Assembly: GCF_006345805.1 (NCBI RefSeq)
Contig: NC_043021.1
Span: 23,560,001-23,624,000 of the forward strand
Length of the DNA: 64,000 nt
Source: Octopus sinensis
Lineage: Eukaryota
Direction: 5' to 3'
In this document: positions 4,332 to 50,622 of the stretch, piece after piece
Position numbering within the stretch: position 1 is the stretch's first letter
How the letters are laid out: each line of letters starts with the position of its first letter
Program-made: the position numbers and the translations under genes
The notes under the pieces: generated by a model
Seen by the model: only the letters and a program-made list of their open reading frames with translations
The model's database searches: none
What the model was told of the DNA's origin: nothing

Positions 4332-4336
4332 GTATA

Positions 4337-4383
<47 letters not shown>

Positions 4384-4405
4384 GGTCATACTGCAATACA
4401 CTAAC

Positions 4406-4675: not shown

Positions 4676-4720
<45 letters not shown>

Positions 4721-4721
4721 G

Positions 4722-4752
<31 letters not shown>

Positions 4753-5011
4753 TGTGTGTGTGTGTATATACATATACATATACATATTCATATACATAAA
4801 GACTCACACACATATATAATTACATATATATATGTATATACATATACATATATACATTTATAACCAAATATATAGATAAATATAGATATATATTCATATA
4901 TATACATATATATATACTTATATGTACGTATATATATGCATATATATATATATATATATTTCCATATGGAAGTGTGTATGTGTACAAATATGTATGTTTG
5001 TGTGTATGCAT

Positions 5012-5564
<553 letters not shown>

Positions 5565-5851
5565 GACTTTCTTTATTGGCCACACAGTGCTGAATACAGA
5601 GGGGACAAATACAAATGTAGAACATTTCTTGTCGCAAATGAAAATGAAAAAGGGAAAAAAACAAAAAAAAAAGTAAAGTTCCGATGAAAAAGGTCGGGGA
5701 AAGAAAACAAAAGGCGATCAAAAGGGATCGTATCCCAGAAGAATTTTTTTTAATGTAAGAAGCAAGATTAGGTTTATCCGTAGAAAGAAAATCCTGTGGA
5801 AAAGACCACGGTAACTTCAGGCAGGGCGGGAATAAACACATGAGAGCAAAG

Positions 5852-5900
<49 letters not shown>

Positions 5901-6271
5901 TCTCGATTTACCGGATCATGCTCAAAGTGTAAATAGGTCACGAGACGTGACATGACAGGACTATTGTTACTAAGTTCGTCATAGCTGCTGGGGAAGGGAG
6001 AGAGAAAAAGAAGAAAAAATTGTTCTGTTGGACAGGATGTTTACTCCAAGGAGGGGGCGTCTAAGATCTTGGGGAAAAAAGAATTTAAGTTTTGACCATA
6101 CACTCAATAACACTATAAAATGGTCAAAAATTAAATTCTTTTTTCTCCAAGATCTTAGACCCCCCCCCTCCTTGGAGTAAACATCCTGTCCAGCAAAACA
6201 CTTTTTTTCTTCTTTTTCTGTCTCCGTTCCCCTCTTTTTCTTTAACAGAAATACAACAACACACACACATT

Positions 6272-6313
<42 letters not shown>

Positions 6314-6614
6314 TTCTCCCCATCCATCACCCTTTTGTACTGTCTTATATCCCTCCCCACCACTACACCCTCAATAACACTATAAAATGGTCAAAACTTT
6401 TTTCACAGGAACTTAGTTCGATTTGAAAACCCCACTAGAATGGGAGAAAGCGCTAATACATGATCTAAGTTATATGATGTATAAAAACATGTAATATACA
6501 AATAAATATCTGTAAATATAAAACCATCTGAATTTCTGAGTACCTCATTTCTTCTAATATAAAATACCTGTACATCATCTCCAAACCTTCCAATATATAT
6601 ATATATATGTATAT

Positions 6615-7076
6615 ATTTGTGTGTTGTATATGAATAAATGAAAGAATGTAGTCGAACGAAGATGTTAACAAAATTCCTTTACTCTCGACACTAATCTTGC
6701 TAATTCCAACCCATCATACAAGCTTTGTTTACCATGTAGGCAGTCATCGAAATTTTTGTTTGTCTTGTTGTTGAGAGAAGCTCCCTTTCTTTCCTGATGA
6801 GAAGATTTCATAATGCACCCTTTATTCCTTTGGAATGATACCATGTTGTCTTCGAAACATATGTCGAGAGTAAAGGAATTTTGTTAACATCTTCGTTCGA
6901 CTCCATTCTTTCATTTATTCCTATACAACACACAAATTTCTGCACATGAACCCGGAGTTTCTACCCTTGGACAGGTCGCTTCAACCGTGTTTCTGACGTG
7001 AATTTGCTACCCTGGTATCGGTTCAACGAATTTTCCATGCTGACGATAAACATAGGATAATTCATTCACCTATTTA

Positions 7077-7080
<4 letters not shown>
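6615..7080 (+). mobile_element. Solo PLE pseudo-LTR with an upstream inverted partial copy
   Basis: 6615-6690 is the reverse complement of about 6862-6935. 6780-7020 is homologous to the pseudo-LTR at 13385-13670. No ORF. Flanked by (TA)n. Confidence 0.7.
6784..6876 (+). ncRNA. Type I hammerhead ribozyme with long stem II
   Basis: CUUUC-CUGAUGA (6794-6800), stem II GAAGA...UCUUC, GAAA (6854-6857), palindromic stem III ACAUAUGU, GUC at 6863-6865, then GAGAG closing stem I. Confidence 0.8.
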
Positions 7081-7128
<48 letters not shown>

Positions 7129-7131
<3 letters not shown>

Positions 7132-8943
7132 GTAAACCAACGTATAGTAACTGAAAAATTCATATATATTAATACAAACACGAAACTTACAATTACTTAT
7201 TTTGCATTACCTTTGGCTATATTTACAGCGTGTGTCGAAATATTTCTTATTTATTTCTAAAGTGCACTGTAATTAAAAACAAACTTACGAAAAACAGGAA
7301 CCACTTCTCTGTGTGATTATTGTTGCGCAGCTCATGTCAGCCTATCCAAAATGTGGGTCCAAGAAGTTTTAAATTTGGCAGAGGATAACCCTTTTCAGTT
7401 CTAGACATCAGTTTAAGCCATTTTCGTCTCTAGAATAAGCAGAGGGAAGATAGAAAAATGCACACCATGACTGAATTTGCATGTTATTTATCGACCCCCA
7501 TTATAATAAAAAGGGAATGGTTGAGCTTGGCAGGATTTGACCTGAAAGTGGAGGGAACTGAAAATAATTTTGTGAATCATTCAACTCGATGCTTTATCAA
7601 TTCTGCCGGTCCTCTACCTTATGGAAGACGTATCCGTTGTCGAAAATAAGGGCGCAAGCCAGACATTTGTACAAGTCTCAAATTTTGATTCGAAAGCAGC
7701 TATTTTGGTGGGTGGGGGCCAGTCGATTACATCCAGCCCCAGCATCCAACTGGTACTTATTTTATCGACTTCGAAAAGATGAAAGGCTAAGTTGACCCCG
7801 GTGGAATTTGAACTGAGAACATAAAGAGCTGTGAAATACTGCTAGACATTATGTCTGGCGGTGCTGACAATTCTGTCAGGTAACGGGCTTAAGGTACATT
7901 TATACTAAAATATGATTTAAGCTTTAAATAAATATATAATTTGAGCACTGATTGAAGAATAATAGTTTTATTTTACTCAAATTTAGTCATTAGAACCATC
8001 TCTGCTAGGGACATACATAGAATCACAGTGTCTAAACAAGCACTGGTGTCGGAAATAGCCAGTAGGCTTTTAAGATCATTATTAGCGACAGAAGCAGTAT
8101 GAATAGCAAAGAAGGAATATTGATCCTTATTTAAAAGTGGATGTTGTGTTAAAACAAAAATTACTGCGATAGTTACCATGAGAGAACTCTGATATTGGCT
8201 TTTAGTGTATAAAAGCACTCTTCTTTATATTGCGAGCGGGGAGATAACTCACCTGCCATCACCACCACCGAAACTTCCAGATAACGGGATTTCGGTCTTC
8301 ACTGACTTTGTTAATTATAGAAGCTCCACTGCTGGAGTCAGCAGCGATATCTCTGCTAGTGATACTCATAGAATCATAGTGCGTAAACAGGCACTATACT
8401 TACACACACACACACACAAACAAACAAACGCACACACACACAAACATATTCACACAAACACACACACATACACACACACACACGCACACGCACACCCACA
8501 CACACACACACATTCATTCCCAAACACACACATATTTAATTCACAATATACGCATGTATATAATTCGGTGGTAATCACAAAAAAATCCCCTTTAGTGGAC
8601 CAGATCACAAACTACATAGGAAACCAATACGTAGGAGTGTAATGTAGAGTCTTATGCAGTTGTAATGTAGTCAACCTAATGAAGGAGGAGGATTTCAGGA
8701 AGAGTATGTAGACTCTAAAGAAAGTCAGGAGGTACGAGATGAATATATTTATCGCACCACTTGATATCCTTAGGATAACATTCATCTCGCAGTCAACATC
8801 ATGTAGAAATGATTTATTTTAGTGTATAATATATTACTTTACATGCCTGCAATCGTTTGGATGCTATAAAAGAACTATTGTACATTTTATAAACAAACTA
8901 ATACAGATATAGAAGTCTAGCTCAACAGATCAACAAATTATCA
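7129..8943. repeat. Inverted segmental duplication, partner 38788-40799
   Basis: Near-identical reverse-complement sequence, also seen as mirrored ORFs 7458/40470, 7589/40339, 7973/39955 and 8205/39723. Confidence 0.9.
7966..8400. repeat. About 351-nt tandem unit of unknown nature (also 15800-16310, 39290-39965, 48450-48960)
   Basis: ATCTCTGCTAG..GA..CATAGAATCA.AGTG..TAAACA.GCACT recurs at 7998 and 8349. Diverged homologues lie upstream of copies B and C. Confidence 0.7.
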
Positions 8944-8976
8944 TGGTTAATCAAATTTTTAAATTCCTGCTTATAT

Positions 8977-9014
<38 letters not shown>

Positions 9015-9229
9015 TATAAGTAAAAGGGCAGGCAACAGGTTGGTCTGCCGCATAGCGAAAGAATTAGAAATAGCAGTCACAGACTGTTTATTTCCACTTT
9101 CTACAAGTGGGGGCTCCATATACGACATAACCCTGCAATTCACATACGCAAAACAGGAGGAGTAAATAAACGAAAACAATCTCTTACTGTTAATGGTGAA
9201 CATGTTTCTAGATCGGAGGCGAGAAATTG

Positions 9230-10050
9230 CCTAATGTCTTTCTTCAGCACCACCTGATAGGATTATTCGAATCCTGTTTAAGTCAAGTTTTGTTTAAGTC
9301 AAGTTTTGTTCAAGTAGTGAGTTCTTGTTGGGTGAGTTGTATCCAGTTTTGTTCAAGTAGTGAGTTCTTGTTGGGTGAGTTGTATCCAATTATGGGTGGC
9401 TTATCTGGTATTCTTTGAAGGAATCTATCCAGACTCCGTTTAAAGTTGATGGGATCCTTTTCCTCTTTGATCTCCCTCGGGACAATGTTAAATAGGGCAG
9501 GGCCTGTTGAGGAAAAGAAATTATGTTGCAGTGTACATGTATGTTGTGATCTTGAATTGGGCAGGGGACGTATAGCCCGTGGTCCAAGTCTTGGATGAAC
9601 CTTGAAGCTAATGTTTAGGTCGTTTGGGCAAAGTTGGCGGTATATTTTCCACATCGTACAAATGATGTACCGCTCACGGCGACGCTGGAGGGAGTAAAGT
9701 TTCAAGGCTTTAAGGCGATCCCAATAATCGAGAGCAGGCATGCCTTCAACTCGTTTAGTGAGTGCCCTCTGGGGTGACTCAATTCTGGAGATGTTTTGTC
9801 TTGTGTGAGGAGACCACAGTGGGCAGCAGTATTCAAGGTGTGGCCGTACAAAGGAGGAAAAAAGTGGTATGATGACACCTTGTTCTCTGGACTGGAAAGT
9901 TCTTAAGATCCAGGAACTCATCCTACGAGCTATATCGACCTTCTTGTTGATGTGTGCACTCCAACTGAGATCGTCATCAACAATTACACCCAGGTCTCTG
10001 ATATTGTTAGAGGCAGTGAAGGAAGAGAGTATGGTTGTTTTAGTGAGGAA
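9230..10050 (-). mobile_element. CR1/L2-type LINE 3' fragment
   Basis: FVRPHLEYCCPLWSPH...IESPQRALTKRV...YWDRLKALKLYSLQRRRERY is the CR1/L2 RT C-terminus. A 43-nt tandem repeat lies at the 3' end (9303-9388). Cut at its 5' side by PLE sequence. Confidence 0.9.
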
Positions 10051-12699
10051 TTTCTTCCAAAATGCATCAGCTCAAATTTTGAATTAAAAAAATTGAGTTA
10101 ACGCAGGTGTAATCAGTTATTTTTACTTTCGACACATGTTTCGAAAATTCCACTAATACTATTTTATTTTACTTAAATTTAGTCATTAGAACCATCTCTG
10201 CTAGGGAAATACATAGAATCACATACGTTAACTCCATTTTTTATTCATATTATTCAAAATATTCAACGTAAACACGAAGTTTCTACCTTTATAAACAAGG
10301 AGTTACAACACCCTTACTTGTGAGATTTTTGCTGCCCTGGTAACTATTTATTTATTTTTTCCGTGTTAATTGTTAACAAAGTAAAAATACACTCATCTAT
10401 TTATAATGCTTTAATCAGGTTTATTATAACCTGCTAACTGAATAGTTACAGCATATGGAGTTATTGAATATTAACGCATCTCTTAAGGACATTCCTATTC
10501 CACCTAAGAATGTTTTCCTTAAACAACTTGTCAATAAGATAAATTCATTCATCAACCGAATAAGATGGCTTACCTTTTTCTTTGACAAAAATGACACTCA
10601 ACAACACACTAATGATAAAACATCTGAGTTCAACAAGTTATTTAAATCTAAAAATAGTCCGCCGCCTAACCCAAGATTGAAGCAATTTGAAGATGATCTC
10701 TGGTCCATTGTGAGAAATATAAAATTTCAACGATTACCACTAAGAAATAAACATCTGAGGTATCTTCGCAACATCACCAAAGAAATCAATTCTATGGATA
10801 CTATGTTGGTTCAATCTGATAAGACTGGAAAGCTGTACAAACTTTATAAAGACTATTATTTGGAATTACTTAAAAAAGAAATTCAGAAAAAGTATAAAAT
10901 TGCTGATAAAAGAATACTTAAGAAAGCCAACATTTAGGCTATGAAAATGATGGAGAAATATAACCTACAAATGAAGACAGAACCACTTGTTCCTAAGCAA
11001 CCTCGGTTCATTTTGAAGGATCACAAACCAATTTTTTTTACTAACCCATCATTAAGGCTTATATGCCCTTCTAGCTCTGACATCGGTATCCTTAGTAAAA
11101 ATATACTAGATATATATATTCCTAATTTAATCAAAACATTAAAACTTAGTTTATGGACTAATTCGTTTGAAATAGTTGACTGGTTTAGTTCTATTAACAA
11201 TAAGGTGAGTACTAAGTTTATCCAGTTTGATATTTCCAATTTTTATTCATCTATCAATCCAATAGTACTTAATAAGGCACTTTGGCTTGCTCATAACAAA
11301 GCTGGTCTCACCCGAGAAGAAATTAATGTTGTGCTGGCAGCCAGAAGATCTATTATTAAATTTGATGATAAGTTGTGGGTCCGTAAAGACACACCAGATA
11401 GTTTCGATATACCAATGGAAAGTTCTGATTCAGCACAGATAGCTGATTTGGTCTGTATATATATTCTTTTTGAAATGGCTGAAGAGTTCCCTAACATTTA
11501 TGAAGGTCTATATCGTGATGATTGTTTACTTTACCTACAAAATGTTTCCAACCAAAAGGTACAAAAAGTTAAGAATAGTTTAGTTAATTTTTTCAGTAGA
11601 ATGGGCTTAAAAATCGTTTTTGATGACGATATGACGAAGGCCAACTTTTTATATATTACGCTTAATTTACACAGTGACTCTTACCTCCCATATCGTAAAC
11701 CGTTGACCAATCTTAAGTACATTAGCAAATTTAGTAATCATCCTGGAGCGATTACTAAGAACTTAGTTAAGAATAGTTCATTTAGATTATCTAAATTATC
11801 TGCTAATGTTGATATTTTCAATAATAACGCTGAATTCTATAACTCTGCCTTAATCAAAGCAGGTTATACAGAGAAAATTTTCTACATAGATTCTGCTCAG
11901 TCTAATTGTAAATTCAATAATGTAGATAAGATTTCTAGTCGTAAAAGAACTATTGATAACAAACATAACTTACGCACCGATACAAAGCGAATGAAGGCAG
12001 ATAACCCTTATTTAATCCCCTATTATCGATCTAAAAGTAAATATAACACCTTCAAAAGTAATTACGCTATGAATACTAGTAAAAGTATTTGGTTAATATT
12101 TCCTTACGGGAGACAAATTAAATCTAATCTCCCACTGCTGTTTCGTCAAGCCATTGCTAGGAATTTTCCAAACAATTCTAGATATTACTCTATAATCAAT
12201 TCACATAAGGTCAGGATAGGTTTTTCAAACACAAAAAATCTCTTGCAAATTATCTCTTCTCATAATAACAAACTGTTAAATATTAATACATTTACTAATA
12301 CTAACATTAATTTAGCTAATACTATCCAACCCTCTAGAAATATTAATAACAAGGTCATTGTATCTGAAGTCAATTCCAATAGAATTAAATTTATGTCAAG
12401 TAACTCTAAGGTTAAAAATTATATATACCAGTGGTTAATCAGTACTCGTAATAAAGTACGATTTTACATTGGAAGCACATCGTTAGAGTTATCTAAAAGA
12501 ATTTCTATCAATTACTCAACATTTAGGGATAGAAATAAACGGAATAGTACCAGTCTCATCAAACTGATTTGGGATTTAAAAGACGACAATGAACAATTTC
12601 ATTTAGAATGGTTGATTCTCTCAATTTCGATACCATATGACAAAGGCAAGAAATTCTGTCTTCTCTGCAATTCTGAGCTATTTTTTCTAAAAATACTCT

Positions 12700-13113
12700 A
12701 GGAGTGGCTGTGTGGTAAGTAGCTTGCTAACCAGCCACATGGTTCCGGTTTCAGTCCCACTGCGTGGCATCTTGGGCAAGTGTCTTCTGCTATAGCCGCG
12801 GGCTGACCAATGCCTTGTGAGTGGATTTGGTAGACGGAAACTGAAAGAAGTCTGTCGTATATATGTATATATATATATATGTGTGTGTGTGTGATTGTGT
12901 GTCTGTGTTTGTCCCCCTAGCATTGCTTGACAACCGATGCTGGTGTGTTTACGTCCCCGTCACTTAGCGGTTCGGCAAAAGAAATCGATAGAATAAGTAC
13001 TGGGCTTACAAAGAATAAGTCCCGGGGTCGATTTGCTCGACTAAAGGCGGTGCTCCAGCATGGCCGCAGTCAAATGACTGAAACCGGTAAAAGAGTAAAA
13101 GAGTAAAAGAGTA
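12700..13113 (+). mobile_element. tRNA-derived SINE family 1, inserted in the PLE endonuclease
   Basis: Head GGAGTGGCTGTGTGGTAAG...GGTTTCAGTCCC, internal (TA)/(TG) tract, tail (GTAAAAGA)n. Other copies at 30794-31200, 63414-63815, 42600-42900(-), 45870-46080, 20620-20830 and 56200-56360(-). Confidence 0.85.
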
Positions 13114-13384
13114 GTAAACACGTTTATAGAGCGAGCATACAGATGTAAGCATTGGAAGAAACATACATTTAGTGCATATAAGTAGTCTCTATCATTATAT
13201 ATAATTTAAACTTTAATTTCCTTTATATTTAACATTCACTATTAATATCCCTACTCTTTCTGTTAGCTACTTATGACGTTATATCATATAACGTTTTTTT
13301 AAACAAAATTAATAGCGTTCTGTCTATCGCTATACAAATCCATCATTTTTTGCTAAAATGTCTTATTGACGAGTTTCGTTTTTT

Positions 13385-13476
13385 TCACTTTCCTGAGGAG
13401 AAGATTGCATTGTTTATACCATTTATTCTTTTGAATAGTATCAGTGGAATTTTCGAAACATGTGTCGAAAGTAAAA
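13385..13476 (+). ncRNA. Type I hammerhead ribozyme in the PLE pseudo-LTR
   Basis: ACUUUC-CUGAGGA (13393-13399), stem II of about 55 nt, GAAA (13455-13458), ACAUGUGU, GUC at 13464-13466, GAAAGU closing a 6-bp stem I. Confidence 0.8.
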
Positions 13477-13672
13477 ATATTTGATTACACCTGCGTTAAC
13501 TCCATTTTTTTATTCATATTATTCAAAATATTCAACGTAAACACGAAGTTTCTACCTTTATAAACAAGAAGTTACAACACCCTTACTTGTGAGATTTTTG
13601 CTGCCCTGGTAACTATTTATTTATTTTTTCCGTGTTAATCGTTAACAAGGTAAAAATACACTCATCTATTTT

Positions 13673-13776
<104 letters not shown>

Positions 13777-14245
13777 CTTTATATGTTTTGTTCGTATTTG
13801 GATATATGCATATACTTGTGGAATTACAATTATTTTGACGCCAAGCTAGATTCATTGGTCAATGGTTTTATAAATTCCAGATAAAAACTTATCCAGATTG
13901 GAGGGATGGCAAAGTGGGATGGAGTCATGCTTGAAATTTCGAAGTATGAATTGTTGCTTTGCGAGGGGATTAAGTTTTCTCACTAATATTTAAAACATTC
14001 ACTGATTAGGAGATTTAGATCTTCAGTAACGCAGAGGTCGCTTCTGCTGCTCCGTCCCTTGTATTTACTGCACAGAATTGTGTAAGGCTCAGAATATAAG
14101 AGATTTACAGATGAGAGACCCGCACTCAACAGAATCACAGCATGCAAAACGTACATATATACGCTCTTATACATCCATCCATTCACACAAGTGTGTGTGT
14201 GTTTATATATATATATGTATATATGTATGTATGTATACATCAATG

Positions 14246-14276
<31 letters not shown>

Positions 14277-14849
14277 ATACATACAATTTACGGAGATGTA
14301 CTTGCATAACAAGTGACTTGATCTGAGGTCGTGTACTGAAACAAAGAAATTGCAGCGTGGAAGAAGTTTATAAGACATTTAAGAACACACAAAACACCGT
14401 TAGCTTCACTTCAACATTTAAATTTAATTTTTTGTCAAAATAATTTCGTGTGTTTATAAAAATGTACATACGCATAAATTACTCTTCAAAACTATTAAGC
14501 AAGGGCACTATTTTTTTTTTCTGGCGTACTATACTCCTCAAAATCATGACACTCACCTCTAGTTAGGAAATGGAATTAAAGAAGGCATTGCAATATTCAA
14601 ATTTATTGAAATCCAAAAATAAATTGGATAATAATTAAGAAAAATCATACAGTTCCAGAACCTGCCCCTTTCAAAATTATAATGTCTGATTAGATAATGT
14701 TGCAAAAATGATGCAAAACTGGGAAATTATGATATATTTCAATGATATTCTCTTGCAGTGCCTCAAAAATAATGTGCTTGACCACCACTTTTCTGAATTA
14801 CTTCAGACATGCGATTTCATGCTCCCAATGAACTTCTGCACTATCCATA

Positions 14850-17309: not shown

Positions 17310-17415
17310 ATGTGGAAGCTTTTCTCAATTATTTTACTGCAATGGGCATTAACCTCTCAAGGATTTTATTTTCGGACTGAACTCGATTGGGAAGCAGAGC
17401 AAAAACCCCAAAAAG
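17310..17415 (+). CDS. Stanniocalcin-like secreted protein, copy B, exon 1 (signal peptide)
   Basis: ATG at 17310 gives [35 protein letters not shown] plus 1 nt, then donor AAG|GTTAGT. Hydrophobic signal peptide. The same 106-nt exon is intact in three copies. Confidence 0.85.
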
Positions 17416-21289: not shown

Positions 21290-21997
21290 TTAGCTATCAA
21301 ATGATAGTTTATTCAAAGTAGTCGCCTTCAGTTTCCACCACTGCCTGAAGACGTCTCCGGAAGCTAGCTCATGCGTTTCTCTTGGTCACTAGCTCGCCAT
21401 TTTGCTGCCAGCGGTGCAGATGGTATCTTTCTCAACCGCACCCCACACATAATAATCCATGGTATTAAAATTGAGGGAATTAGAAGTCCAGAAATTGGTC
21501 TAGTGAAGTCGTAAAGTTGTAAAGATTCTCCGATTTCAGAATTTCCGGAGGTGTGGCAAGGAATCGAATTCTGTGGGCCACACATATGGCATTTCAGTAG
21601 AATCCTCCCCAGACAGATTTTCAACCACAGTTTCCAGCAGCTTCATATAACCGTCTGAATTGAGCCTAAGGCCCTGTTCTGGCGTGCTGGCGCAGTTAGA
21701 ACGCTTGTTGTGTCGTCCACGTCTTTGTATCTCCGTTGCAGTTGTCCGTCACTTCTTTCAGCCTTTATAATGTTCACAGAGCATTGAGCAGAAGTCATGA
21801 TGTCAGTATTCTGACACCCGGCACGAGTCGTCAATATACAAGGAACTCTTCTCTAATGTTCAAATGGCTTCCAGTCCTCCATATCAGTAAACTTTTTCTC
21901 AACATGCTCACCAACGCCGTTGACTGTTCACTGCTACATTAAGTTGTTCATGGAAAACAGAAGACATAAAAATTGTCAAATTTATCCCGAACACCCT
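21290..21997 (-). mobile_element. Tc1/mariner-type relic, duplicated at 57400-58157
   Basis: MDYYVWGAVEK motif in the second copy, HTH-like N-terminus, TIR-like end AGGGTGTTCGGGATAAATTTGACAATTTT. Confidence 0.7.
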
Positions 21998-22089
21998 ATA
22001 TGTTTGATCAGCGCCGCTTTAGAAGTAACCTCTTATACAACAATAACAACAAGAACAACATCCTACTTTTTCTTTTCTCCATTTTTCAG

Positions 22090-22247
22090 CTGTCACTAAG
22101 GAATGCCTGCAATACAGTAAGGATTTGGACTGCAGGTTCTATGAATGCTTAGAAGAAAGATTTCCCTGTGGACACGGCGTGCAAAGGGGTCAATCGCGTG
22201 CTCATTGTGTGAAAGTCAACGAAAGAGCAAATAAATTGACTGAAGTG
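22090..22247 (+). CDS. Stanniocalcin-like protein, copy B, exon 2
   Basis: Acceptor TTTTTCAG| and donor GTG|GTAGGT, 158 nt, phase 1 to 0, matching exon 1 and exon 3. Reads (A)VTKECLQYSKDLDCRFYECLEERFPCGHGVQRGQSRAHCVKVNERANKLTEV. The C-x-FY-x-CLE-x2-FPCG pattern resembles invertebrate stanniocalcin-like proteins. Confidence 0.9.
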
Positions 22248-24940: not shown

Positions 24941-27900
24941 AGATTACACCGGGGGACGTTTAAGGTGTAAGAAGGAAAATTCAGAGCTCCGAAATCTATC
25001 CACAAACATCGAAAACAAGGACATCCTATGGAGCCAAAGTTTTGCTAACAAAGAATTGGACTGTATCCGAGTAAGTAATACTAATTGAAATTTATTACTA
25101 TTTTCGAAACGAAATAATGTATTTTGACTCGATATTATCTCCACCTCTAACGCAACACATGTAAACATGCGTGGAACACCACGATCATCCCCGACCTCAA
25201 ACACCATGTACAAAGGAACTACGAAGAAATTAAATGCCACCGATACTATTCAACCCAAGTATAACAATCGAGCGGTACGTACATTAAACCTACAACAAAA
25301 AATGTACGAAAAACTACACGTGCGAAATAATGTGACAACAGAAATAAACGGACCGGTACCCTACGAAAATGACGACCGTCAAAATAATGGGCCGGACGTT
25401 GTACCTCATGTCCCGCAAATAAAACCCAAAAGACGTAAATGGACACGTGAGGAATACATTTCTATCTTACACGCATACTACACAGCAGTACTCTACCCCA
25501 AAAATGAAAATACAACAACACATACATATAAAATATGGAAGGAAAATAATAGAGATATAGACTTGGATACAGCAATGAACCCTAATAAATTAGCTAACGT
25601 ACGAAGATACATTCTCAACACAAAAAAAAATATCAGAAATAGAAATAGAACACCTAAAAGAAAACATACACCAGGAAAATGTAGATAGAAGCCACACAAC
25701 AATGCCCAATAATATAAACACTGAAAATGTAAAACACGAAGACAAACGCAACATTCCCAACAAACACGATGTAAACAACGAAGGGGAGCCTAATGATTAT
25801 GATAATATAAAAAATAAAATAATCAAAGAACTAAAAACCACAGAGCTCAAAATGGACCACCGACCATACCCCCCAAGAATAAAAATAAGCGCAATAAGAA
25901 CACCAATTATAAACAGCATAAACCTAGCCGTCACTGAACTAGCCACTGAAACAAAAAAAAAAAAAAAAAGTGATATCACTGAACTAAATGACTTGATATA
26001 CGCAGCAGCCACTGCAGCCACAAAAGAAGCTGGATACTCACCCAAACCCGCCCAAACAGGAGCACCACCACCCAAACAAACCCTGTGGATAAATAACATC
26101 CAAAACAAAATTTAAAAAATTAGAAAAGACCTGTCGATCCTTAATGAAATCAGCAAAGAATCAACGCTACTGAGCAACAAAAAGAGAACAAAAATGCTCC
26201 ACAAATATAACATCACAGAAAAAGATTTGCCGGAGATAAAAGAAAAGCTGAAGCAAGATATCCTTGCCAAAGCTCAAAGGATCCGCCGGTACGAGAAACG
26301 CCAACGCTTCTTTGAACAGAACAAAAAGTTCAACACCAACCCCAAAAAGTTCTACCAAGATCTGGGAAAAAATTAAATAGAAGTCACTGCAGCACCAACG
26401 GCAGAAGAATTGGAAGAATTCTGGAGAGAAACATGGTCGGCGAACGAACAGCCAAAAAAAAGGAGTATCAAAATAACAAACTCGGCATCTGAACAACTTT
26501 GGACCCCCATAACAACTGAAGAGGTCACCCAGGCACTGCAAAAACTAAGCAACTGGAAGGCACCTGGGCATGACAAGATCCCCAACTTCTGGTTGAAATA
26601 TCTAACAGGAATGCACAAAAAGCTGGCTGAAAACTTTAACAGCATACTAGCAGAGCCAGAGACAATGCCTGAATGGCTCACGAAGGGGAAAACCATCTTA
26701 ATTCCCAAATCAAATGAAACAGCAAAACCAGAAAACTACAGACCAATAACCTGCCTCCCTACTATGTTCAAGGCATTTACTGCAGTGATATCGCAAAGGC
26801 TGAACAAGCACCTGGACGAAAACAAACTGTTCCCAGAAGAGCAGAAAGGATGCCGCAAGGGCTCATATGGCTGTAAAGATCAACTAATGATTAATAAAGC
26901 CGTCACTGAAGACAGCCACAGAAAGAAGAAAGGCCTCAGTATGGCCTGGATTGACTACAAAAAGGCGTTTGATAGCATCCCCCACACATGGATCCTTGAA
27001 ACACTAGCCATTAACAAAGTAGCACCAACAATCATAAAATTCATAGAGCACTCTGTGAATAAATGGCAAACAGTCCTACATCTCCAAACAAAAGAGGGAC
27101 TCATGAAAACCAAAGACATCCCCATCAGAAGAGGAATATTCCAGGGAGACACGCTCTCTCCACTCCTTTTCTGCTTGGCACTGTCACCTCTATCTGATAT
27201 GCTAAATAGAACTGGATGCGGATATAAATGTTACGGCAAAACGATCAGCCACCTTTTATATATGGATGACCTAAAACTATACGCTGCAAATGACAAACAG
27301 CTGGAAACACTATTAAAGACAATTCATGGATTTACCAAAGAAATAGATATGAAATTTGGATTAGAAAAATGCGCCAAAGTAACCATGAAAAGAGGAAAAC
27401 TAGTTAAGAGTAACAACATCACACTAGATAAAACCGATGAAATAAAAGAATTAGACCAAAGCCAAACTTACAAATACTTAGGAATCCATGAACTAGATAA
27501 GACACAACACACACAAATGAAAGAGAAAATAAAAAAAGAATATTATAGACGAGTTAGATCAATACTAAAAACAGAGCTTAATGCTAAAAACAAGATAATA
27601 GGTATCAACACTTTAGCTGTCCCAGTTATAAGTTACAGCTACAATATCCTTAACTGGACACGAAATGAACTGTCCAAAATAGATAGGAAAACAAGAAAAA
27701 TACTGACAGGATCTAGGATGCATCACCCAAAATCTGCCATAGAAAGACTATATATACAACGTATAGAAGGTGGTAGAGGCCTTATACAGATGGAAAACTA
27801 CTATAAAATAACCACCATAGGACTGCAAAAATACCTACTTCAGAAGGAAGGAAAACTGATCCAGATAGCAGCAAAACACGAGCAAAACAAAAAACTGTTC

Positions 27901-28918
27901 TCAGTATTTAAGGAAGCTGACAAATACAAACAAGAAATCATGCCACCTAATAAACACGAAAAAGAAGAAGATGATGAAGAAACAACAAAAGCTATAAAAC
28001 AAATGAAATCCAAACTAAAAATAGAACAGCAACGAACCATGATAAAACGATGGCAAGAAAAGCCCCTTCATGGTAAATACTGCACTAAACTCAACCCAAA
28101 AGAAATAGACAAAGAAAGATCCCAGCAATGGTTGAGAAGCTCAGGACTCAAAGCAGAAACAGAGGGATTTTTAATTGCAGCACAAGACCAAAGCCTCCCC
28201 ACCAGAAATTATCAAAAACATGTAATGAAAAGAAATATTACAAGTAACTGCAGAATATGTGGAGATGGACAAGAAACAATAAATCATATTATCTCTAGCT
28301 GCCCAGTCCTGGCTAAGAAGGAATATATTTACAGACATGACAGAGTTGGAACCTACATACACTGGAAGCTATGTCAACATTATGGAATAACAACAGAAAA
28401 AAGATGGTATAGGCACACACCAGAAAAGGTTACAGAAAACGAGAAAGCAACCATACTCTGGGATATGCCGATACACACAGATAGAGAAATTAAGGCCAAC
28501 AGACCAGATATAGTTGTCAGAGATCATGAAGAAAAAAAATGCTTTCTAATTGATGTATCAATACCGGCAGATGACAACGTGTCTCTAAAAGAAATGGAGA
28601 AACTCTCAAAATACAAAGACCTGGAAATAGAGGTAACTAGAATGTGGAATCTGAAAACAGAAACAATTCCTATCATAGTAGGTGCATTAGGCATGATAAA
28701 AAAATATTCAGACAAATACATAACAAAAACACCAGGACTTACAAACACATATATCATACAAAAAATTGCACTACTAGGCACTGCACACATCCTACGCAGA
28801 GCACTTTCCATACAATAACCATCAGAGCATCACAACAAATCACAGCACATACCCAAGGCACACAGAGCTGCGCTCGGTAGTGAAGTGAAAGCACGCTATA
28901 AAAATAAAACTACTGAAT
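24941..28918 (+). mobile_element. Near full-length Dong/R4-type non-LTR retrotransposon (RT plus restriction-like endonuclease) in (AAT)n
   Basis: N-terminal KRRKWTREE fragment with frameshifts. ORF 26410-28818 has YMDDLKLY, CRICG..ETINHIISSC, RHD, RPDIVV..IDVSIP and EKLSKYKDL. Both ends are in TAA repeats. Absent from the paralogous site near 60855. Confidence 0.92.
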
Positions 28919-29176
28919 AATAATAATAATAATAATAAGTAATATTAATAATAATAAAAACAATAACAATAATAAAGTGAAATGTTAGCATCCCGGGCAA
29001 AATTGTAAGCGGTATTTCGCCCATCTTCACGTTCTGAGTTCAAATTCCGCCAAGGTTGACTTTGCCATTCAGCGTTTCGGGGTCGATAAATTAAGTACCA
29101 GGCAGTCCCATAATTTCAGGGTTTGTGTTTATAGTAGAAAGGATTATTCTTATTAATATTATTATCATTATTATTA

Positions 29177-29230
<54 letters not shown>

Positions 29231-29761
29231 GTTTGTTGAGGCGATGAGCAGGCCAAATCGTTAATACGCCGGGCAAAATGCTGAGCTCAAATTCCGCCGA
29301 GGTCGACTTTGCCTTTCATCCTTTCAGAGTGGATAAAATAAATTCCAGCTGATCATTGGGGTCGATGTAATCGACTAGTTTTCTCCCCCAATATTTCAGG
29401 CTTTGCGCCTGTAATAGAAACGACTATTATTATTTTTGTTTTACTCAATAAATACGTAATTCTACTTCAGTTTTCTAATATTTCCATACATTAAGTATGT
29501 TGACAATCAAATTATCTTTTATTTAACAAGTAGCTGGCAACCCTAACCATTCAGGACACGACCGTCACTCTGAGAGGTACTTTCAAAATACCCGCATCAC
29601 CTTCTTTGTTATGGTACATTTCACTGCTACCATAAACCCATCATTTCTCGTTACTTAGATTTATAACGTTTTTATAAGTCAGGCATTATGCACTGACCGA
29701 GTGTCTCTGTTTTTCCTTTCATCCCTTCACTATTTTTTATAATCAATACATTATCGTATGT

Positions 29762-30090
29762 GAAGGTGCATAGCACAGTGGTTAGAGAGTCGGGCCCACA
29801 AGTATAAGGTAATGAGTTCGACTCCCAGACCGAGGCGTGTGTTGTGTTCTTGTGCAAGACCCTTTATTTCACGTTCCTACAGTTCACTCAGCTGTAGAAA
29901 TGAGTTGCGACCTCAGTGGTGCCAAGCTGTATCGGCTTTTCCTTTGGCATGGAAAAAGGAGGCAGGTATGCATAGCTGACTGCTGATCTTCCATAAACAA
30001 CCCTGCCCATTCTTGTGCTTTGGGGGGGGGGGCAACTTTCTAAGTGCAGACCCATGGTCATTCATGACCGAAGGTTTTTTTTTTACCCTT
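29762..30090 (+). mobile_element. tRNA-derived SINE family 3, partner 62390-62710
   Basis: A-box TAGCACAGTGG and B-box GAGTTCGACTCC in a tRNA-like head. Confidence 0.7.
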
Positions 30091-30323
30091 CCTTCTTCTA
30101 AGCGCCATTATTAACTTATCTATTCCTTACTCCGCCAGATTAGAGAGACAAAGAATTGGGGTCTTTGTTATCTACTTGGCCTCCATTCCTCTCAAAATTA
30201 CTGCTCTTTTGTTAAAAGTAGATAGAATTACTATTCACTCCCCCCCCCCCAAATAAATAAATAAATAAACAATCCCCCAAAAGTCAATTTTTGCATTCAC
30301 TAATCACTGTCTAATATTCACAG

Positions 30324-30550
30324 GGAAAGATCTGGATAAATAGTATTACAAAATGTTTCGTGAAAGAGACAACAAAAATCTACCTACGTCCGTCAATCGA
30401 TTGTAAAGAAGCTAACAATCTTATCCTGAACATACAAAAACATTGTTACACAGACAATGATTTCTGTAATGTTGGCTGGAAGCACCGCAAGGAACTGTGG
30501 AATTTATTCGATAAACCCATAACCACTTCCAAAAAACAATACTATAAAAT
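30324..30550 (+). CDS. Stanniocalcin-like protein, copy B, exon 3
   Basis: Acceptor TTCACAG| and donor AT|GTAAGT, 227 nt, phase 0 to 2. Reads GKIWINSITKCFVKETTKIYLRPSIDCKEANNLILNIQKHCYTDNDFCNVGWKHRKELWNLFDKPITTSKKQYYK. The G-x2-WI-x4-C ... C ... CY-x4-FC pattern is stanniocalcin-like. Confidence 0.9.
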
Positions 30551-31861
30551 GTAAGTATTTGTTAATTTTTTTGTTGTTGGCGGTGGTGTTAGTAATTGAG
30601 GAGGTGGTGGTGATAGTAATAGAGGAGGTGGTGGTGGTCGTGGTGGTGGTATTCGTGATGATGGTTGCATTGATCGAGTGAGGGACATCTTGGTGTTGTG
30701 GAGGGACATGTAATTGTTGGCGGAGACTCAGTTCAATTTTGCTCGAACATTCAGATGGACGGGTGTCGTTCTGGATATCAGGATATAACATATGTGTGGC
30801 TGTGTAGGAAGAAGCTTGCTTCCAAATCACATCGTTCCGGGTTCAGTCCTACTGCATGGCACCTTGGGCAAGTGTCTTCTTCTACAACCTCGAGCCGACC
30901 AAATCCTTGAGTGGATTTGATCGGCAGAACCTGAACGAAGCCCGTCGTTTGTATGTGTGTGTATATGTGTGTGTGTATGTGCGAGTGTATGTGTATCTGT
31001 GTGTGTTTGTTTCCCGTATCTGTGTTTTCCCAACCACAACGCACGACTACCGGTGTTGGTGTGTATACGTCCCCATGAATTAGCGGTTCGGCAAAATAGA
31101 TAGGCTTAAACAATGAGGACTGGTATCGATACGCTCGACTAAAATTCTTCAAGGCGGTGCCACAATATGGCCGCAGCTTAAATGAATGAAACAAGTAAAA
31201 TATTGAAGATGTCTGTGTCTGGCTGAATAACATGCATTTACTACCCATTCCATCGTGGTGTGACGAACCATTGAGGGATATTCTTTGCTGTTACATGTAA
31301 AATTCCCTGCTAACCTCTCAAAGCACCACCTTTGAATATTACGATAACAACGGCATGATAAGTCTATATCTACCAAGCAAGCAAATAACCAATCAACCAA
31401 GATAAAACTATGTAACCACTTAAAGCATGATATTTGTAGTGGAGGAAGTATTTTTTCTCTGCAATATTTTCCCAGCTCCTTTTTCAGTCCTAGTGCCTAT
31501 AGTTGAAGGAATATTTTCTCCATATTTCTATGGATATTGAGCTTTATTAAAGTGTTTTTGTTTTGTTTTTTTTGCTGCTGCTTTGAACGACAATCCTGTC
31601 TTATTTAGGTCGACATTAATCTTGTTTTCCTTTTAGGTAGAGGCAGTCTACGGCATTGTTGATGTAGGCACTTTTTGTACTAGTCAATATCTTTCAGGCT
31701 TTCAGATCAAGGGTTCCGATCTTATAAAACATTCAACCAAGTGGCCGAAATGCTGGAATGCATACTATATTGGTATTGCAAATACATTGTGGTTCATTAA
31801 TTTAACGTATGCAGATTGTTCTGAGATTCATATTTTCTTGTCCGTCTGTTAAATGTTTTAG

Positions 31862-35528: not shown

Positions 35529-35658
35529 AATGTGGCAAAATTTTGCCAAGATGTCTTCAGAATGCAGTACGACAACTGCTGACCAATTAATACCATGGGT
35601 CAAAGCCCAATTCAACGATGGCGATGATTTGGCAAATATGTGGAAGAAATTACATTAA
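35529..35658 (+). CDS. Stanniocalcin-like protein, copy B, terminal exon 4
   Basis: Acceptor TATATTGCAG|, phase 2 compatible with exon 3. Reads (I)MWQNFAKMSSECSTTTADQLIPWVKAQFNDGDDLANMWKKLH*. Supplies the tenth Cys. Total CDS 621 nt = 206 aa. AATAAA at about 35834. Confidence 0.75.
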
Positions 35659-42899: not shown

Positions 42900-45690
42900 G
42901 CAAACCAACCAAAGTACAGACCCTCCACGACAATCCATGTACTACAACCATTTTTAGACGCAAACCAGAGAAACAGATATGTGAAATGGAAACAAATAAA
43001 CAAGTCCAACCGAAAATAATCAACCTGTCAAAGAAAATCCTGAGTTCTACACAAATAAAAATCCTAGCAAGAGGTCTAAAATATACCGAACCCAAATGAA
43101 ATTAAGGACAATACTTTGGACTTCTGCCGAAAATTACGCCTCACAGAAGTTCTTTACAACTATACCAGTGAAGATGACTCAATAGTGAAAAACAAAAGTG
43201 AGAACCATCCTACAAAAGGTAGAAATAAAGCACTTGATGTTTTCTGTGATCACTTCACTTGTTTTCCTTACAATACCATTCCAAAACAACATATCAATTC
43301 CAACCTTAATTTAAACGAATGGAAAGACTTTGTCGAGCTAAAAGAATTACATAAACCTCACTATTAAAGAAGCTGACAAAGGAAGTACGGTAGTATTGAT
43401 GGATACAGAGTACTACAAAAATTTAATACTTTCCATGTTGGAAAATAATGCTTACTATGAAAAACTAACATATTACAACCCACAGAAGACACTGAAAAAT
43501 TTATCCTCCCTACTCCAAACTCATGGAAAGGGTCTTACAACACATGAAATTGACTATCTATCCAATTTCAAATACAGTCTCAGTATATTCTACGGATTAC
43601 CCAAGATACATAAGAATCCACTCATTTGTGAAGCCTGCAAAGTCCTCTACAAGCCTATGCATTAATGTCCCTCCACCTACTGACCTCAAACTCAGGCCCA
43701 TCATAGCTGACCCTTCCTGCGAAACCCACCGTTTGAGTAACTTTCTTGACATACTACTCAAACCTCTTTTAAAATATGTGAAAAGCTACATCAGGGATGA
43801 CCTAGACATGCTGAACCACCTCCCGAAGACAGTAAAGGACGGAACTCTACTGGTGTCTTTCGATGTGGTGAATCTATACACTAATATCCCACACGACTAT
43901 GGTATAGAAGCAATCACATTTTGGCTAGAAAGGCACCCAGAAGAGATCCCAGGACGAATTAACCACAATTTTATAATTGAAGCACTTAAATTCGTCCTGG
44001 GGAACAATCATTTCTTGTTCGATACTAATTACTATCGACAGAAATGCGGAATTGCAACGGGGACCAGAGCCGCTCCAGTTATTGCAAACCTCGTAATGGG
44101 TTACCACGAACTTAAGTTATACCAATCATCACTAGAAAAATATGGCGCCTCTTTCAATTACTACTTAAAGGAGAACTGGAAGAGATATTTAGATGATTGC
44201 TTCATACTTTGGCAAGATAGCATGGATCAACTCCTTGATTTTAAAAGAATGCTCAACAACATACACAGCAATATTCAATTCACTATGGAACACAACAGTA
44301 AGCAACTACCTTTTCTAGACATCTTAATTAGAATAGTTAACAACCACATAGAAACAGACATCTTTTATAAACCCACAGACTCTAAACAATACCTATTATT
44401 TAACTCTTGCCACCCCAAACACATAAAAATCAACATACCCTTTAACCTAGCAAAAAGAATCTGCACCATAGTTTCCGATACATACACTCGTGAACATAGA
44501 CTCCTTGAAATTAGATCTACACTAACTAAAAGACACTACCCAATCTCATTAGTAAATGAAGGCATCAAAAGAGCTAAGTGAATAGATATACAAAGATTAA
44601 GGAAAACTAGCCGAAATACTCAACAAGACTTAAAAATACTCCCGTACATCTCCACACATAACCCCAGAAATAACGAAGCCTTCAACATCATCACCCAAAA
44701 CCTCCCCATCCTCACAGCAGACAAAACAATGAACGAAATTTTAAGCTCATATAAAATTAGAAAAAGCAAAAAGCAACCGAAGTCACTGAAAATAATACTA
44801 ACCAGCGCTAGACTTTACCAACTAACAACTGAGCTAAAAGTGACAAAATGTGGACGTTCTAACTGTGGAACATGCCCCCCACCTTCTGGAGGGTTCAGAA
44901 TTCCATTTCAAACAAGGAGAAATATTTAAGATCAAATCAAATTTCACCTGCGCCTCGGTAAATGTAATATATGTCATGACATGCATAGAGTACGGTAAAC
45001 TCTATATTGGACAAACAGGAATTTCGCTCCGTCAAAGAATCACCATTCACAGAGAGCAAATCCGCCACCCACAATACAGACAGTTAAAGGTGAGTGAACA
45101 CATAGAAAGATGTGCCAGGAATCTTAATCCCAATTTCCAAATATTTCCCTTTTACCAATGCTCACAGAACACCACAATGCAACAAAGGTTGAATAAAGAG
45201 TCATTTTTCATCAACAAATTTCTCTCCCAACTGAATCTGAACACACAACTCAATACAGAACACCACTAACTCTTCAATTTAAACCACTAAACCCTATACA
45301 CTTTCTACATCACTCACATTTCTAATTCCTGAACTACTTACTACCCTTATACATATAATCCAGAACTACTTACCTCCCTTACAAATAAGCACTTTTCTCA
45401 GGAACTATTAGACCTGACACCGTTTACTAACCGGTGTTGTTCAAACGATGAATAGCTAACACGAAAACCAATTGGTTCGTTTCAGTCTCTTACATTATTA
45501 TTATTACTATTATTAACTTCTTATAATCATCAATAATAATGACCTTTTCGACGAATAATACTTTAAATGTATATATTTGTCACTACCTGTCATAAATAGC
45601 CTTTTTATATCTATAATATGCATTTTCGTTGATTCTTCATTTTTACCCTTACATTTCCACGTGGATTTTATATTTTTTTTCAAAACATAT
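42900..45690 (+). mobile_element. Penelope-like element (Neptune-like), frameshifted
   Basis: ILARGLKY N-terminus. RT 43523-44581 with FDVVNLYTNIP and WKRYLDD. Linker KCGRSNCGTC. EN NVIYVMTC..LYIGQT..RITIH. Ends at (TA)n. Confidence 0.92.
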
Positions 45691-50516: not shown

Positions 50517-50622
50517 ATGTGGAAGCTTTTCTCAATTATTTTACTGCAATGGGCATTAACCTCTCAAGGATTTTATTTTCGGACTGAACTCGATTGGGAA
50601 GCAGAGGAAAAACCCCAAGCAG
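50517..50622 (+). CDS. Stanniocalcin-like protein, copy C, exon 1
   Basis: [35 protein letters not shown] plus 1 nt, donor CAG|GTTAGT, 106 nt as in copy B. Confidence 0.85.

Follow-up and report, generated by a model that had tools for sequence, protein, structure and literature searches.

Exon 3 was found to be more diverged than its adjoining introns between two tandem paralogues of Octopus sinensis, referred to as genes B and C, and this excess of exonic over intronic divergence was confirmed in the present analysis. The window, i.e., the whole stretch of 64,000 nucleotides that was analyzed, corresponds to CM016883.1:23560001-23624000. The variable parts were blocks inside the exons, lying between invariant cysteines, rather than whole exons, and they occurred throughout the family. 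The pattern is probably explained by the exchange of variable segments among paralogues in short tracts, retained by selection, against non-coding DNA that was recently duplicated or homogenized. Steady hypermutation of exons and positive selection acting purely on new mutations are disfavored.

The stanniocalcin-like genes A, B and C are arranged in a tandem cluster, only part of which lies inside the window. The genes of the cluster consist of four exons each, the first coding for a conserved putative signal peptide and exons 2-4 for a predicted helical, disulfide-rich secreted protein. The mature protein has approximately 170 residues, and exons 3 and 4 supply most of its coding sequence in B and C. 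Genes A and B are arranged head-to-head. Only exon 1 of gene A, which encodes the putative signal peptide, was inside the window (4406-4511, minus strand; GT donor; 100% identity to B exon 1 in tblastn), the remainder lying left of the window edge. Gene A is the orthologue of gene E (P0151) of O. vulgaris, and positions 1-14503 of the window were collinear, in inverted orientation, with positions 14423-1 of the O. vulgaris sequence L002 at 97-98% identity. Gene B, on the plus strand, comprises exon 1 (17310-17415; ATG, putative signal peptide, phase-1 donor), exon 2 (22090-22247; four of the conserved cysteines, with a variable block at exon nucleotides 56-150), exon 3 (30324-30550) and the coding part of exon 4 including the stop codon (35529-35658), whose counterpart in C is outside the window at L001:28902-29031. 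Gene C (LOC118767949), also on the plus strand, is represented by exon 1 (50517-50622), exon 2 (58251-58408) and exon 3 (62942-63168), the partner of B exon 3. According to self-BLAST, together with a comparison of the region downstream of B with L001, the duplicated unit of B spans 15758-37879 on the plus strand; the partner unit of C runs from 48409 beyond the window end to approximately L001:32602. The homologous blocks of the two units are broken up by copy-specific insertions. The shift in the B/C alignment offset between HSPs placed one B-specific insertion, not in C, at 24942-29142 in intron 2, and a LINE-type reverse-transcriptase ORF was located within it at 26410-28818 (Pfam RVT_1, E=1.7e-32).

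The annotation of both genes was corrected. Gene B is complete, yet it was missing among the annotated proteins that were recovered, and it is to be regarded as a full gene. The translation of C exons 1-3 was exactly P0152, and the annotated model of C, which is without the last exon, needs that exon. A transcript retaining intron 3 would end early, at a stop codon overlapping the exon 3 donor. A screen for acceptor-plus-ORF combinations requiring at least two cysteines missed exon 4, which was located with homologue peptides.

The genes A, B and C were assigned as stanniocalcin-like and are candidate venom-gland genes. The full-length proteins of B and C matched Pfam PF03298 with 41.5 bits (E=1.3e-10) and 38.5 bits, respectively, at a cut-off of 23, and B exon 3 alone scored 24.7 bits (E=1.7e-5). 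Exon 3 by itself gave no match as the query of a protein word-index search, and an exhaustive HMMER search was needed. The octopus family profile retrieved the human STC2 chains 8a7d, 8a7e and 7y5q with E of about 5e-10. All nine cysteines of exons 2 and 3 were invariant in eight octopus genes, and each was paired with an STC2 cysteine in the HMMER alignment; one more cysteine is encoded in exon 4. Paralogue E (P0151), as modelled with AlphaFold2, was all-helical at a mean pLDDT of 69, and the best four Foldseek matches of this model in the PDB were STC2 chains (probability 0.93-0.98, TM 0.47-0.56), with E-values of only 0.1-0.3. The hydrophobic N-terminus from exon 1, a putative signal peptide, was conserved in all copies. 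The O. bimaculoides proteins P0001 and P0160 had 61-64% identity to B.

The divergence of B and C was evaluated in a global MAFFT alignment of 29143-31381 with 61769-64000. Exon 3 differed by 23 substitutions in 227 nt with no indels (30324-30550 versus 62942-63168); 15 of 75 residues were changed, five of the differences were synonymous and every cysteine was kept, as had been counted by hand in the first-pass annotation. The low divergence that it had described for the flanks was also reproduced, with 0/197 substitutions upstream and 3/739 downstream. The upstream segment (30127-30323, plus strand) is the 3' end of intron 2 and matched C except for the length of one homopolymer, a C-run; the downstream segment (30643-31381, plus strand) is the proximal part of intron 3. 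Another three substitutions were found at 30100-30126. A GGT-rich microsatellite (30565-30642), which starts 15 nt past the exon 3 donor and varies in length among all paralogues, was not reliably alignable and was the source of apparent substitutions just downstream. The ten-fold contrast that had been claimed between exon and introns was valid for the immediate flanks only; against the gene-wide background, the excess was approximately 3.7-fold. Divergence was lower in the immediate flanks (9/911, masked) than elsewhere in the duplicate (248/8493, p=2e-4), and the repeat-masked non-coding total for B and C was 257/9404, or 2.73%. In Fisher tests, the excess in exon 3 was significant against the clean flanks (p=2.8e-14) and against all repeat-masked non-coding B-C DNA (p=4e-7). 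The corresponding values for the synonymous sites of exon 3 alone (5/42) were p=6e-6 against the flanks and p=0.006 against the broad non-coding DNA. The NG86 estimates for exon 3 were dS=0.130, dN=0.105 and omega=0.81, in agreement with the earlier statement that dS was raised and dN/dS was near 1; the dS of 0.13 compares with 0.003-0.027 in non-coding DNA.

Other exons were divergent as well. The coding part of exon 4 differed between B and C at 17/130 nt (13%) and 14/42 residues; the preceding 89 nt were identical, and the excess stopped at the stop codon. Exon 1 differed at 3/106 nt, and exon 2 at only 4/158 nt. Exon 2 of B differed from that of E, D and X at 27-35/158 nt, whereas the 400 nt upstream differed at only 3-6/400; for paralogue pairs other than B/C, 17-25% of exon 2 differed and 0-1.5% of the upstream intron. 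Hence, the view that exon 3 is uniquely special was rejected, because the coding part of exon 4 had the same excess between B and C and exon 2 had it between other paralogues.

The high non-coding identity of B and C (97.3%) might also be expected if the assembly had set two haplotypes, or a repeat that was collapsed and expanded, one after the other, in which case the divergence would be allelic. This reading is extremely improbable. The 4.2-kb insertion with its LINE in B intron 2 is not in C, the content of intron 1 differs between the copies, and the units lie approximately 10 kb apart, with unrelated DNA that contains a further RT element between them. Moreover, there is no N in the window, and changes at 15/75 and 14/42 residues are unlike those between alleles. 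The same pattern recurred in tandem arrays of O. vulgaris (E, X and D) and O. bimaculoides (three copies), which were assembled independently.

Exon 2 was variable only at nucleotides 56-150, and its first 55 nt were conserved like the introns. The variable blocks of exon 3 were separated by conserved ones, namely, the first ~23 nt and ~40 nt of Cys-to-Trp motif codons, in which conservation was intron-like. The differences between B and C clustered in two predicted helices (residues 120-128 and 144-149) with a spacing of i, i+3/4 and i+7. Across the family, variability was periodic on the predicted helix 140-150 (p=0.013), and the periodicity on helix 118-131 was not significant (p=0.10). Synonymous differences were found near non-synonymous ones (12.6% versus 4.9% of codons), which is only suggestive at p=0.07 with non-independent pairs. 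The NG86 omega of exon 2 was 1.2-3.4 for most pairs of paralogue groups in O. sinensis and O. vulgaris. For exon 3, the pairwise omega was 0.6-1.4, i.e., about 1, and dN/dS is confounded by recombination.

These features bear on a classic course of accelerated evolution, in which B and C were recently duplicated and positive selection fixed new point mutations in the exons of the mature peptide with no exchange between genes. The clustering on two predicted helices with helical spacing, the omega above 1 in exon 2 for most O. sinensis and O. vulgaris paralogue groups, the invariant cysteine scaffold and the precedent in toxin families are all in its favor, and 15 of the 23 exon 3 differences were unique to B or C. 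Nevertheless, such a course is unlikely. Synonymous sites were raised as much as non-synonymous ones, and the unique changes themselves included synonymous substitutions (four, versus 14 non-synonymous, in B; three versus five in C). Furthermore, eight sites in exon 3 and six in exon 4 had states common to other paralogues, nearly all differences of a second pair, D and X, can be pre-existing variants, and the X orthologues were without acceleration.

Between O. sinensis and O. vulgaris, the orthologues of X differed at 1/227 nt in exon 3 and 1/111 nt in exon 4, and their introns differed by 1.3-3.4%. Constitutive hypermutation of exons was rejected on the basis of these near-unchanged exons. 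In exon 3, D and X of O. vulgaris differed at 14/227 nt; X of O. sinensis was identical to X of O. vulgaris at every one of these 14 sites, and D had the C-type state at 12 of them. The intron upstream of exon 3 differed at 1/400 between D and X within O. vulgaris, whereas the distance to O. sinensis X was 7/397 for O. vulgaris X and 8/397 for D. This contrast indicates that the introns of the D/X pair were homogenized after speciation, and the option of intron homogenization raised in the first-pass annotation was thereby borne out. The last 400 nt of intron 1 differed by 0-1.5% among six genes of the two species and by 9-16% from O. bimaculoides. Purifying selection was rejected as the cause of the intron similarity, because the same intron segments were 9-16% diverged from that species. 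For intron 2 at -400 to -100, the same paralogue groups were 12-18% apart, and C intron 3 was, in its distal part, nearer to E than to B.

Gene conversion between paralogues was supported at the sequence level by a runs test, by the C-type states in D and by mosaic introns. Among the 23 exon 3 sites at which B and C differ, 10 had a state unique to B, five had a state unique to C, and at eight both states were present in other paralogues; in exon 4, both states were present in other paralogues at six of the 17 sites. A contiguous block of exon 3 (30423-30441) had C identical to D and B identical to E. A Sawyer-type runs test found a shared run of 18/72 polymorphic sites between C and D in exon 3 (p=0.0002) and a significant result for C and E over exons 2-4 (p=0.003), the test being based on few sequences and ignoring rate variation among sites. 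The earlier suggestion that an exon-limited conversion tract fits as well as selection was thus supported by the C-D tract, the shared states at 8/23 sites and the C-type states of the D/X comparison. The states unique to C comprised three synonymous and five non-synonymous ones. Those unique to B numbered 10 in exon 3 and eight in exon 4 (four synonymous and 14 non-synonymous), and no donor for these 18 was found among the compared sequences (seven for exon 3 and four for exon 4). Hence, they must come either from a paralogue outside the sample or from B exons that have long evolved separately. The B-unique states of exon 3 include those at 30326, 30347, 30385, 30419-20, 30441-43, 30510, 30527 and 30535. 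LOC118767950 (L007) was rejected as a donor because its exon 3, at 46% identity, is too distant. No O. vulgaris orthologue of B or C was found in L002-L004.

The splice acceptors and the stop codon marked, to within a few nucleotides, the limits of the substitutions unique to B in exons 3 and 4. Three synonymous differences between B and C lay within 36 nt of the exon 3 acceptor, and the adjoining 197 intron nt had none. Such synonymous differences beside an unchanged intron are not predicted by a smooth model of selection against conversion, and they count against the preferred explanation. An exon-aware mutational mechanism would stop at exon edges, either as episodic hypermutation restricted to coding sequence or as repair that uses a paralogue's spliced RNA, or its cDNA, as the template. 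The sharp step at the exon 3 acceptor, the unchanged 89 nt before exon 4, the end of the excess at the stop codon and the 18 B-unique states without a known donor, four of them synonymous, are compatible with such a mechanism, which is nonetheless very unlikely. Exons 3 and 4 of X were almost unchanged between species, which argues against a constitutive process; the variable blocks fill the exons incompletely, with intron-like conservation at the start of exon 2 (55 nt) and over ~40 nt of exon 3; and the introns were retained. Near-identical intron flanks would also make ordinary DNA conversion tracts look exon-bounded. It is equally doubtful that the 18 B-unique substitutions reflect an episodic exon-recognizing process distinct from conversion by an unsampled copy.

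In the preferred explanation, exchange retained by selection, B and C are young duplicates with approximately 2.7% divergence in non-coding DNA, and the variable blocks of exons 3 and 4, coding for loops and surfaces, would have a different, older history than the surrounding DNA. This older history would account for the 10% and 13% divergence of exon 3 and the exon 4 coding part between B and C. Pre-existing variants of the family would be shuttled between paralogues by interlocus gene conversion in patches of tens of nucleotides, and changes confined to one copy would add to the exchanged variants. Through recent duplication and longer conversion tracts, non-coding DNA and conserved coding blocks would stay alike, and selection for varied secreted proteins would protect the coding differences from erasure. 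The contrast may look exon-bounded because all paralogues are near-identical beside the splice sites, so that a tract entering the intron leaves no trace. Since the pairwise omega of exon 3 is about 1, we infer selection as the retaining force rather than observe it; the direction of each transfer and a role in venom are likewise inferred.

This kind of pattern is already known from accelerated toxin evolution, including accelerated segment switching, and from divergence peaks of the opsin type; the octopus stanniocalcin-like family is a new instance. In snake toxin genes, accelerated segment switching in exons was described under the name ASSET, and the mechanism was left open (Doley et al. 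2008, PMC2474615; 2009, PMC2711939). The octopus genes resemble this system in forming a multigene family, arranged in tandem, for small secreted proteins rich in disulfides; the introns of paralogues are highly similar, discrete exon segments are radically different, and the scaffold, the cysteines and the signal-peptide exon are conserved. They differ in the cephalopod host and the putative stanniocalcin fold and in being candidate toxins only. Moreover, the switched segments of octopus are partly traceable to other paralogues, which points to gene conversion as the mechanism. Peaks of divergence kept by selection despite gene conversion were reviewed for human red/green opsin exon 5 and for RHCE/RHD (Fawcett and Innan 2011, PMC3924837). 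As in those genes, the introns of the octopus duplicates are more alike than a particular exon, there is statistical evidence of conversion, and non-coding DNA is closer between paralogues within a species than between orthologues of two species, the last being the case for the D/X pair (1/400 versus 7-8/397). Unlike those genes, more than two octopus copies exchange sequence and their exons are mosaic rather than unconverted; many sites differ, compared with one or two tuning sites, and divergence changes more abruptly at the exon edge than it would if it simply decayed away from a selected site. Conotoxin genes have a conserved signal sequence and conserved introns, with a hypervariable exon for the mature toxin. 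The octopus family likewise belongs to a venomous mollusc and combines a conserved signal exon with hypervariable downstream coding sequence for the mature peptide, in which the cysteines are invariant, but the protein is large and of hormone-family origin, and its variability extends over three exons.

The closest counterpart by family is SF5, the 'stanniocalcin doppelganger toxins', which a preprint presents as stanniocalcin-like, highly expressed in octopod venom glands and reported from the posterior salivary glands of O. bimaculoides and Hapalochlaena maculosa (bioRxiv 10.64898/2026.02.02.703354). The loci in the window are likened to SF5 by family, as genes for stanniocalcin-like secreted proteins of octopods. 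In the main text of the preprint, no analysis of genomic organization, exon/intron divergence or gene conversion was found for SF5 (bioRxiv 10.64898/2026.02.02.703354). Studies of cephalopod venom genes at the level of gene structure hardly exist. With a sister species and several paralogues available, part of the 'accelerated' change could be traced to exchanged segments that existed beforehand, which the classic cases for the most part did not offer. A hormone-derived, stanniocalcin family of octopus thus evolves like the toxin arrays of snakes and cone snails, and the three assemblies with at least six genes provide a concrete system for how conversion and diversifying selection may build varied secreted proteins.

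The window was identical over 23,484 nt to CM016883.1 of Octopus sinensis (GCA_006345805.1) and corresponded to positions 23560001-23624000. Exon 3 matched the Pfam Stanniocalcin family. Octopus relatives were found by an exhaustive HMMER search with exons 2 and 3 as the query, and exons 1 and 4 were then located with the peptides of these relatives. Gene B was complete (exons 17310-17415, 22090-22247, 30324-30550 and 35529-35658), with canonical splice sites, an intact frame and a 206-residue product. Neither A nor B was recovered as an annotated protein; because the collection searched held no protein identical to B, the O. sinensis annotation appears to lack this gene. Gene C (LOC118767949) had exons at 50517-50622, 58251-58408 and 62942-63168, and its fourth exon lay beyond the window, at L001:28902-29031. 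The RefSeq product of C (P0152, 164 aa) terminated at a TAA stop overlapping the exon 3 splice donor (63166-63174), and hence the model did not include exon 4, which was conserved approximately 6.2 kb downstream of the model's end. The short model may be an artefact of annotation or, alternatively, a genuine short form in which the intron is retained. The donor-overlapping stop was common to all paralogues, and two O. bimaculoides models likewise ended at or just past it.

Of gene A, the window contained only exon 1, on the minus strand at 4511-4406. The gene faced B head-to-head at a distance of approximately 12.8 kb. An inverted duplication (4175-5621 against 17648-16323, 90-95% identity) spanned exon 1 and its upstream region. 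Positions 1-14503 aligned collinearly but in inverted orientation, with 97-98% identity, to positions 14423-1 of L002, which carries E (P0151) of O. vulgaris; A is therefore the orthologue of E. In the O. sinensis assembly the A/E block was inverted relative to the neighbouring genes of the O. vulgaris assembly, where E, X and D were all on one strand. Either the two sister species differ by a real inversion, or one of the assemblies is misoriented here. The cluster extended over at least 23.39-23.89 Mb. The other genes were Xv (P0158, L004) and Dv (P0153, L003) of O. vulgaris, Xs (LOC118767948; P0159, L005) and the more distant LOC118767950 (P0004, L007) of O. sinensis, and three tandem copies, b1, b2 and b3, of O. 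bimaculoides (fused model P0161, L006). The Xs product (228 aa) had a 24-residue C-terminal extension compared with other family members (L005:29927-30038), and its orthologue Xv ended at the usual position. The usual signal-peptide exon 1 of Xv was degenerate (60% identity over 25 residues, L004:24159-24233) and the annotated model started with a different first exon, whereas Xs retained a normal exon 1.

Mobile elements were also present. An 802-codon ORF at 26410-28818 with RVT_1 (E=1.7e-32) and zf-RVT domains belonged to a LINE-type insertion in B intron 2 that C lacked, and a second reverse-transcriptase ORF (43523-44581; RVT_1, E=1.9e-7) lay in the spacer DNA separating unit B from unit C. 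A pair of inverted repeats of approximately 1.8 kb (7113-8941 and 40815-38788, 95-98% identical), with copies in the O. vulgaris loci, is probably a transposable element.

The divergence between B and C was evaluated by global alignment (MAFFT) of 29143-31381 with 61769-64000. Exon 3 carried 23 substitutions in 227 nt and no indels, altering 15 of 75 residues with five synonymous changes, and thus the counts of the first-pass annotation were borne out. The intron immediately 5' of the acceptor had no substitutions in 197 nt, 30100-30126 had three, and 30643-31381 had three in 739 nt; the apparent substitutions in the GGT-rich microsatellite at 30565-30642 were alignment noise. Exon 3 was more diverged than the clean flanks (Fisher p=2.8e-14) and than the entire repeat-masked non-coding B-C alignment (257/9404, 2.73%; Fisher p=4e-7). 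The ten-fold contrast proposed earlier held against the immediate neighbours (approximately 10-30 times) and fell to only about 3.7 times against the gene-wide background, because the masked immediate flanks (9/911) were themselves less diverged than the remaining duplicate (p=2e-4).

The pattern was not special to exon 3. Past the window end, B and C remained collinear across intron 3 and on past exon 4 (95-99% identity), and the coding part of exon 4 differed at 17 of 130 nt and 14 of 42 residues. No differences occurred in the 89 nt preceding the exon 4 acceptor, and only scattered ones followed the stop. In exons 1 and 2, B and C differed at background level (3/106 and 4/158). Between the groups {B,C}, {E} and {D,X}, exon 2 differed at 27-39 of 158 nt, with the variable part confined to nt 56-150. 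The 400 nt of intron preceding it (21690-22089 and counterparts in C and L002-L005) showed 0-6 differences among six genes of two species, below typical orthologous divergence, and were 9-16% diverged from O. bimaculoides. The contrast between exon 2 and its upstream intron between paralogue groups thus exceeded the B/C contrast. In exon 3, the first 23 nt or so and the Cys-to-Trp motif codons were conserved, with the variation lying between these blocks.

Several readings were limited by comparison. Constraint on the introns was rejected, since the same segments were 9-16% diverged from O. bimaculoides. Generally fast mutation of the exons was also rejected, since Xs and Xv differed at 1/227 in exon 3 and 1/111 in exon 4, with introns at 1.3-3.4%. 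The synonymous divergence of exon 3 (5/42 sites, dS 0.13 by NG86) was far above the divergence of non-coding DNA, both in the flanks (p=6e-6) and in the broad background (p=0.006), and dN/dS (omega) was 0.81, in agreement with the earlier suggestion of a raised dS and a ratio near 1. Moreover, the B-unique changes were 4 synonymous and 14 non-synonymous and the C-unique changes 3 and 5, with no replacement enrichment. Positive selection acting on new mutations cannot explain the pattern by itself.

Exchange between paralogues was explored by polarising the B/C differences against seven other sequences for exon 3 and four for exon 4. The 23 sites of exon 3 comprised 10 unique to B, 5 unique to C and 8 with both states elsewhere; the corresponding values for the 17 sites of exon 4 were 8, 3 and 6. 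In a contiguous block of exon 3 (30423-30441), C equalled D and B equalled E, and in exon 4 the E state was present in C at 12 sites. The distal part of C intron 3 resembled E (97.4-98.1%, despite the species difference) more closely than B. In a Sawyer-type permutation test restricted to polymorphic positions, C and D shared 18 consecutive sites out of 72 in exon 3 (p=0.0002), and C and E gave p=0.003 across exons 2-4. The clearest case was an independent replicate, D and X of O. vulgaris, with differences at 14/227 in exon 3 against 1/400 in the intron preceding it. Xs agreed with Xv at all 14 sites, indicating that the X state predates speciation, and D carried the C state at 12 of them. 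In that intron, either gene differed from the O. sinensis X orthologue at 7-8/397; hence the D-X intron was homogenised, or duplicated, after speciation. Furthermore, the apparent ages of the paralogue groups were inconsistent along the gene (approximately 1% at the 3' end of intron 1, 12-18% at -400 to -100 of intron 2, and approximately 20% in exons), for which recombination or conversion is the sole possible source. The last 400 nt of intron 1 point to homogenisation across the family not long before O. sinensis and O. vulgaris diverged. The alternatives named in the first-pass annotation, import of diverged exon segments and homogenisation of introns, were both demonstrable in the family, so its observation is confirmed and its hedged interpretation supported.

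All paralogues were near-identical for tens of nt on the intron side of every splice site, and a conversion tract may therefore enter the intron without trace. Inside the variable blocks every exchange would be visible, so that edges would look exon-bounded; the putative exchange patches would be short (tens of nt) and internal to exons. No donor was found among the genes compared for the 18 states unique to B, four of them synonymous. The first 36 nt of exon 3 held three synonymous B/C differences, adjoining 197 identical intron bases on the other side of the acceptor. An episodic process recognising exons is a very improbable source of the B-unique states; most simply, they would stem from a paralogue outside the sample, or a B-type exon would have evolved separately for a long time before its flanks were homogenised.

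The family assignment was supported by full-length scores of 41.5 bits for B and 38.5 bits for C (Pfam threshold 23), and a PDB search with the family profile retrieved human STC2 (E about 5e-10). Each of the nine Cys in exons 2-3 was invariant across eight genes and aligned to a Cys of STC2. The AlphaFold2 model of E was helical (pLDDT 69), and its four best PDB matches, at E-values of only 0.1-0.3, were STC2 chains. The next-best relatives after the octopus genes were Branchiostoma (amphioxus) proteins (P0005-P0007) of unusual architecture, in which two stanniocalcin-like domains accompany a phospholipase A2-like domain and some members also carry a lysozyme g domain. Stanniocalcin-like "doppelganger toxins" (SF5) are reported to be highly expressed in the venom gland of O. 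bimaculoides and H. maculosa (bioRxiv 10.64898/2026.02.02.703354). No genomic analysis of SF5 was found in the main text of this February 2026 preprint, and its sequences may correspond to genes of this cluster.

Omega was close to 1 or exceeded it, and the scaffold of the protein was invariant. The variability was periodic on one predicted helix (p=0.013), with p=0.10 for the other. From these features and the venom-gland context, we infer that selection retained diversity. The octopus array recalls the conotoxin pattern. Its anatomy matched the "accelerated evolution" and ASSET of snake toxin genes, in which introns are alike, discrete exon segments are switched and the scaffold is kept (PMC2474615), as well as the selection-maintained divergence peaks of converting duplicates, such as red/green opsin exon 5 and RHCE/RHD (PMC3924837). 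What is new is that such an array occurs in an octopus and in a stanniocalcin-like family, and that part of the "accelerated" change was traceable to pre-existing paralogue variants.
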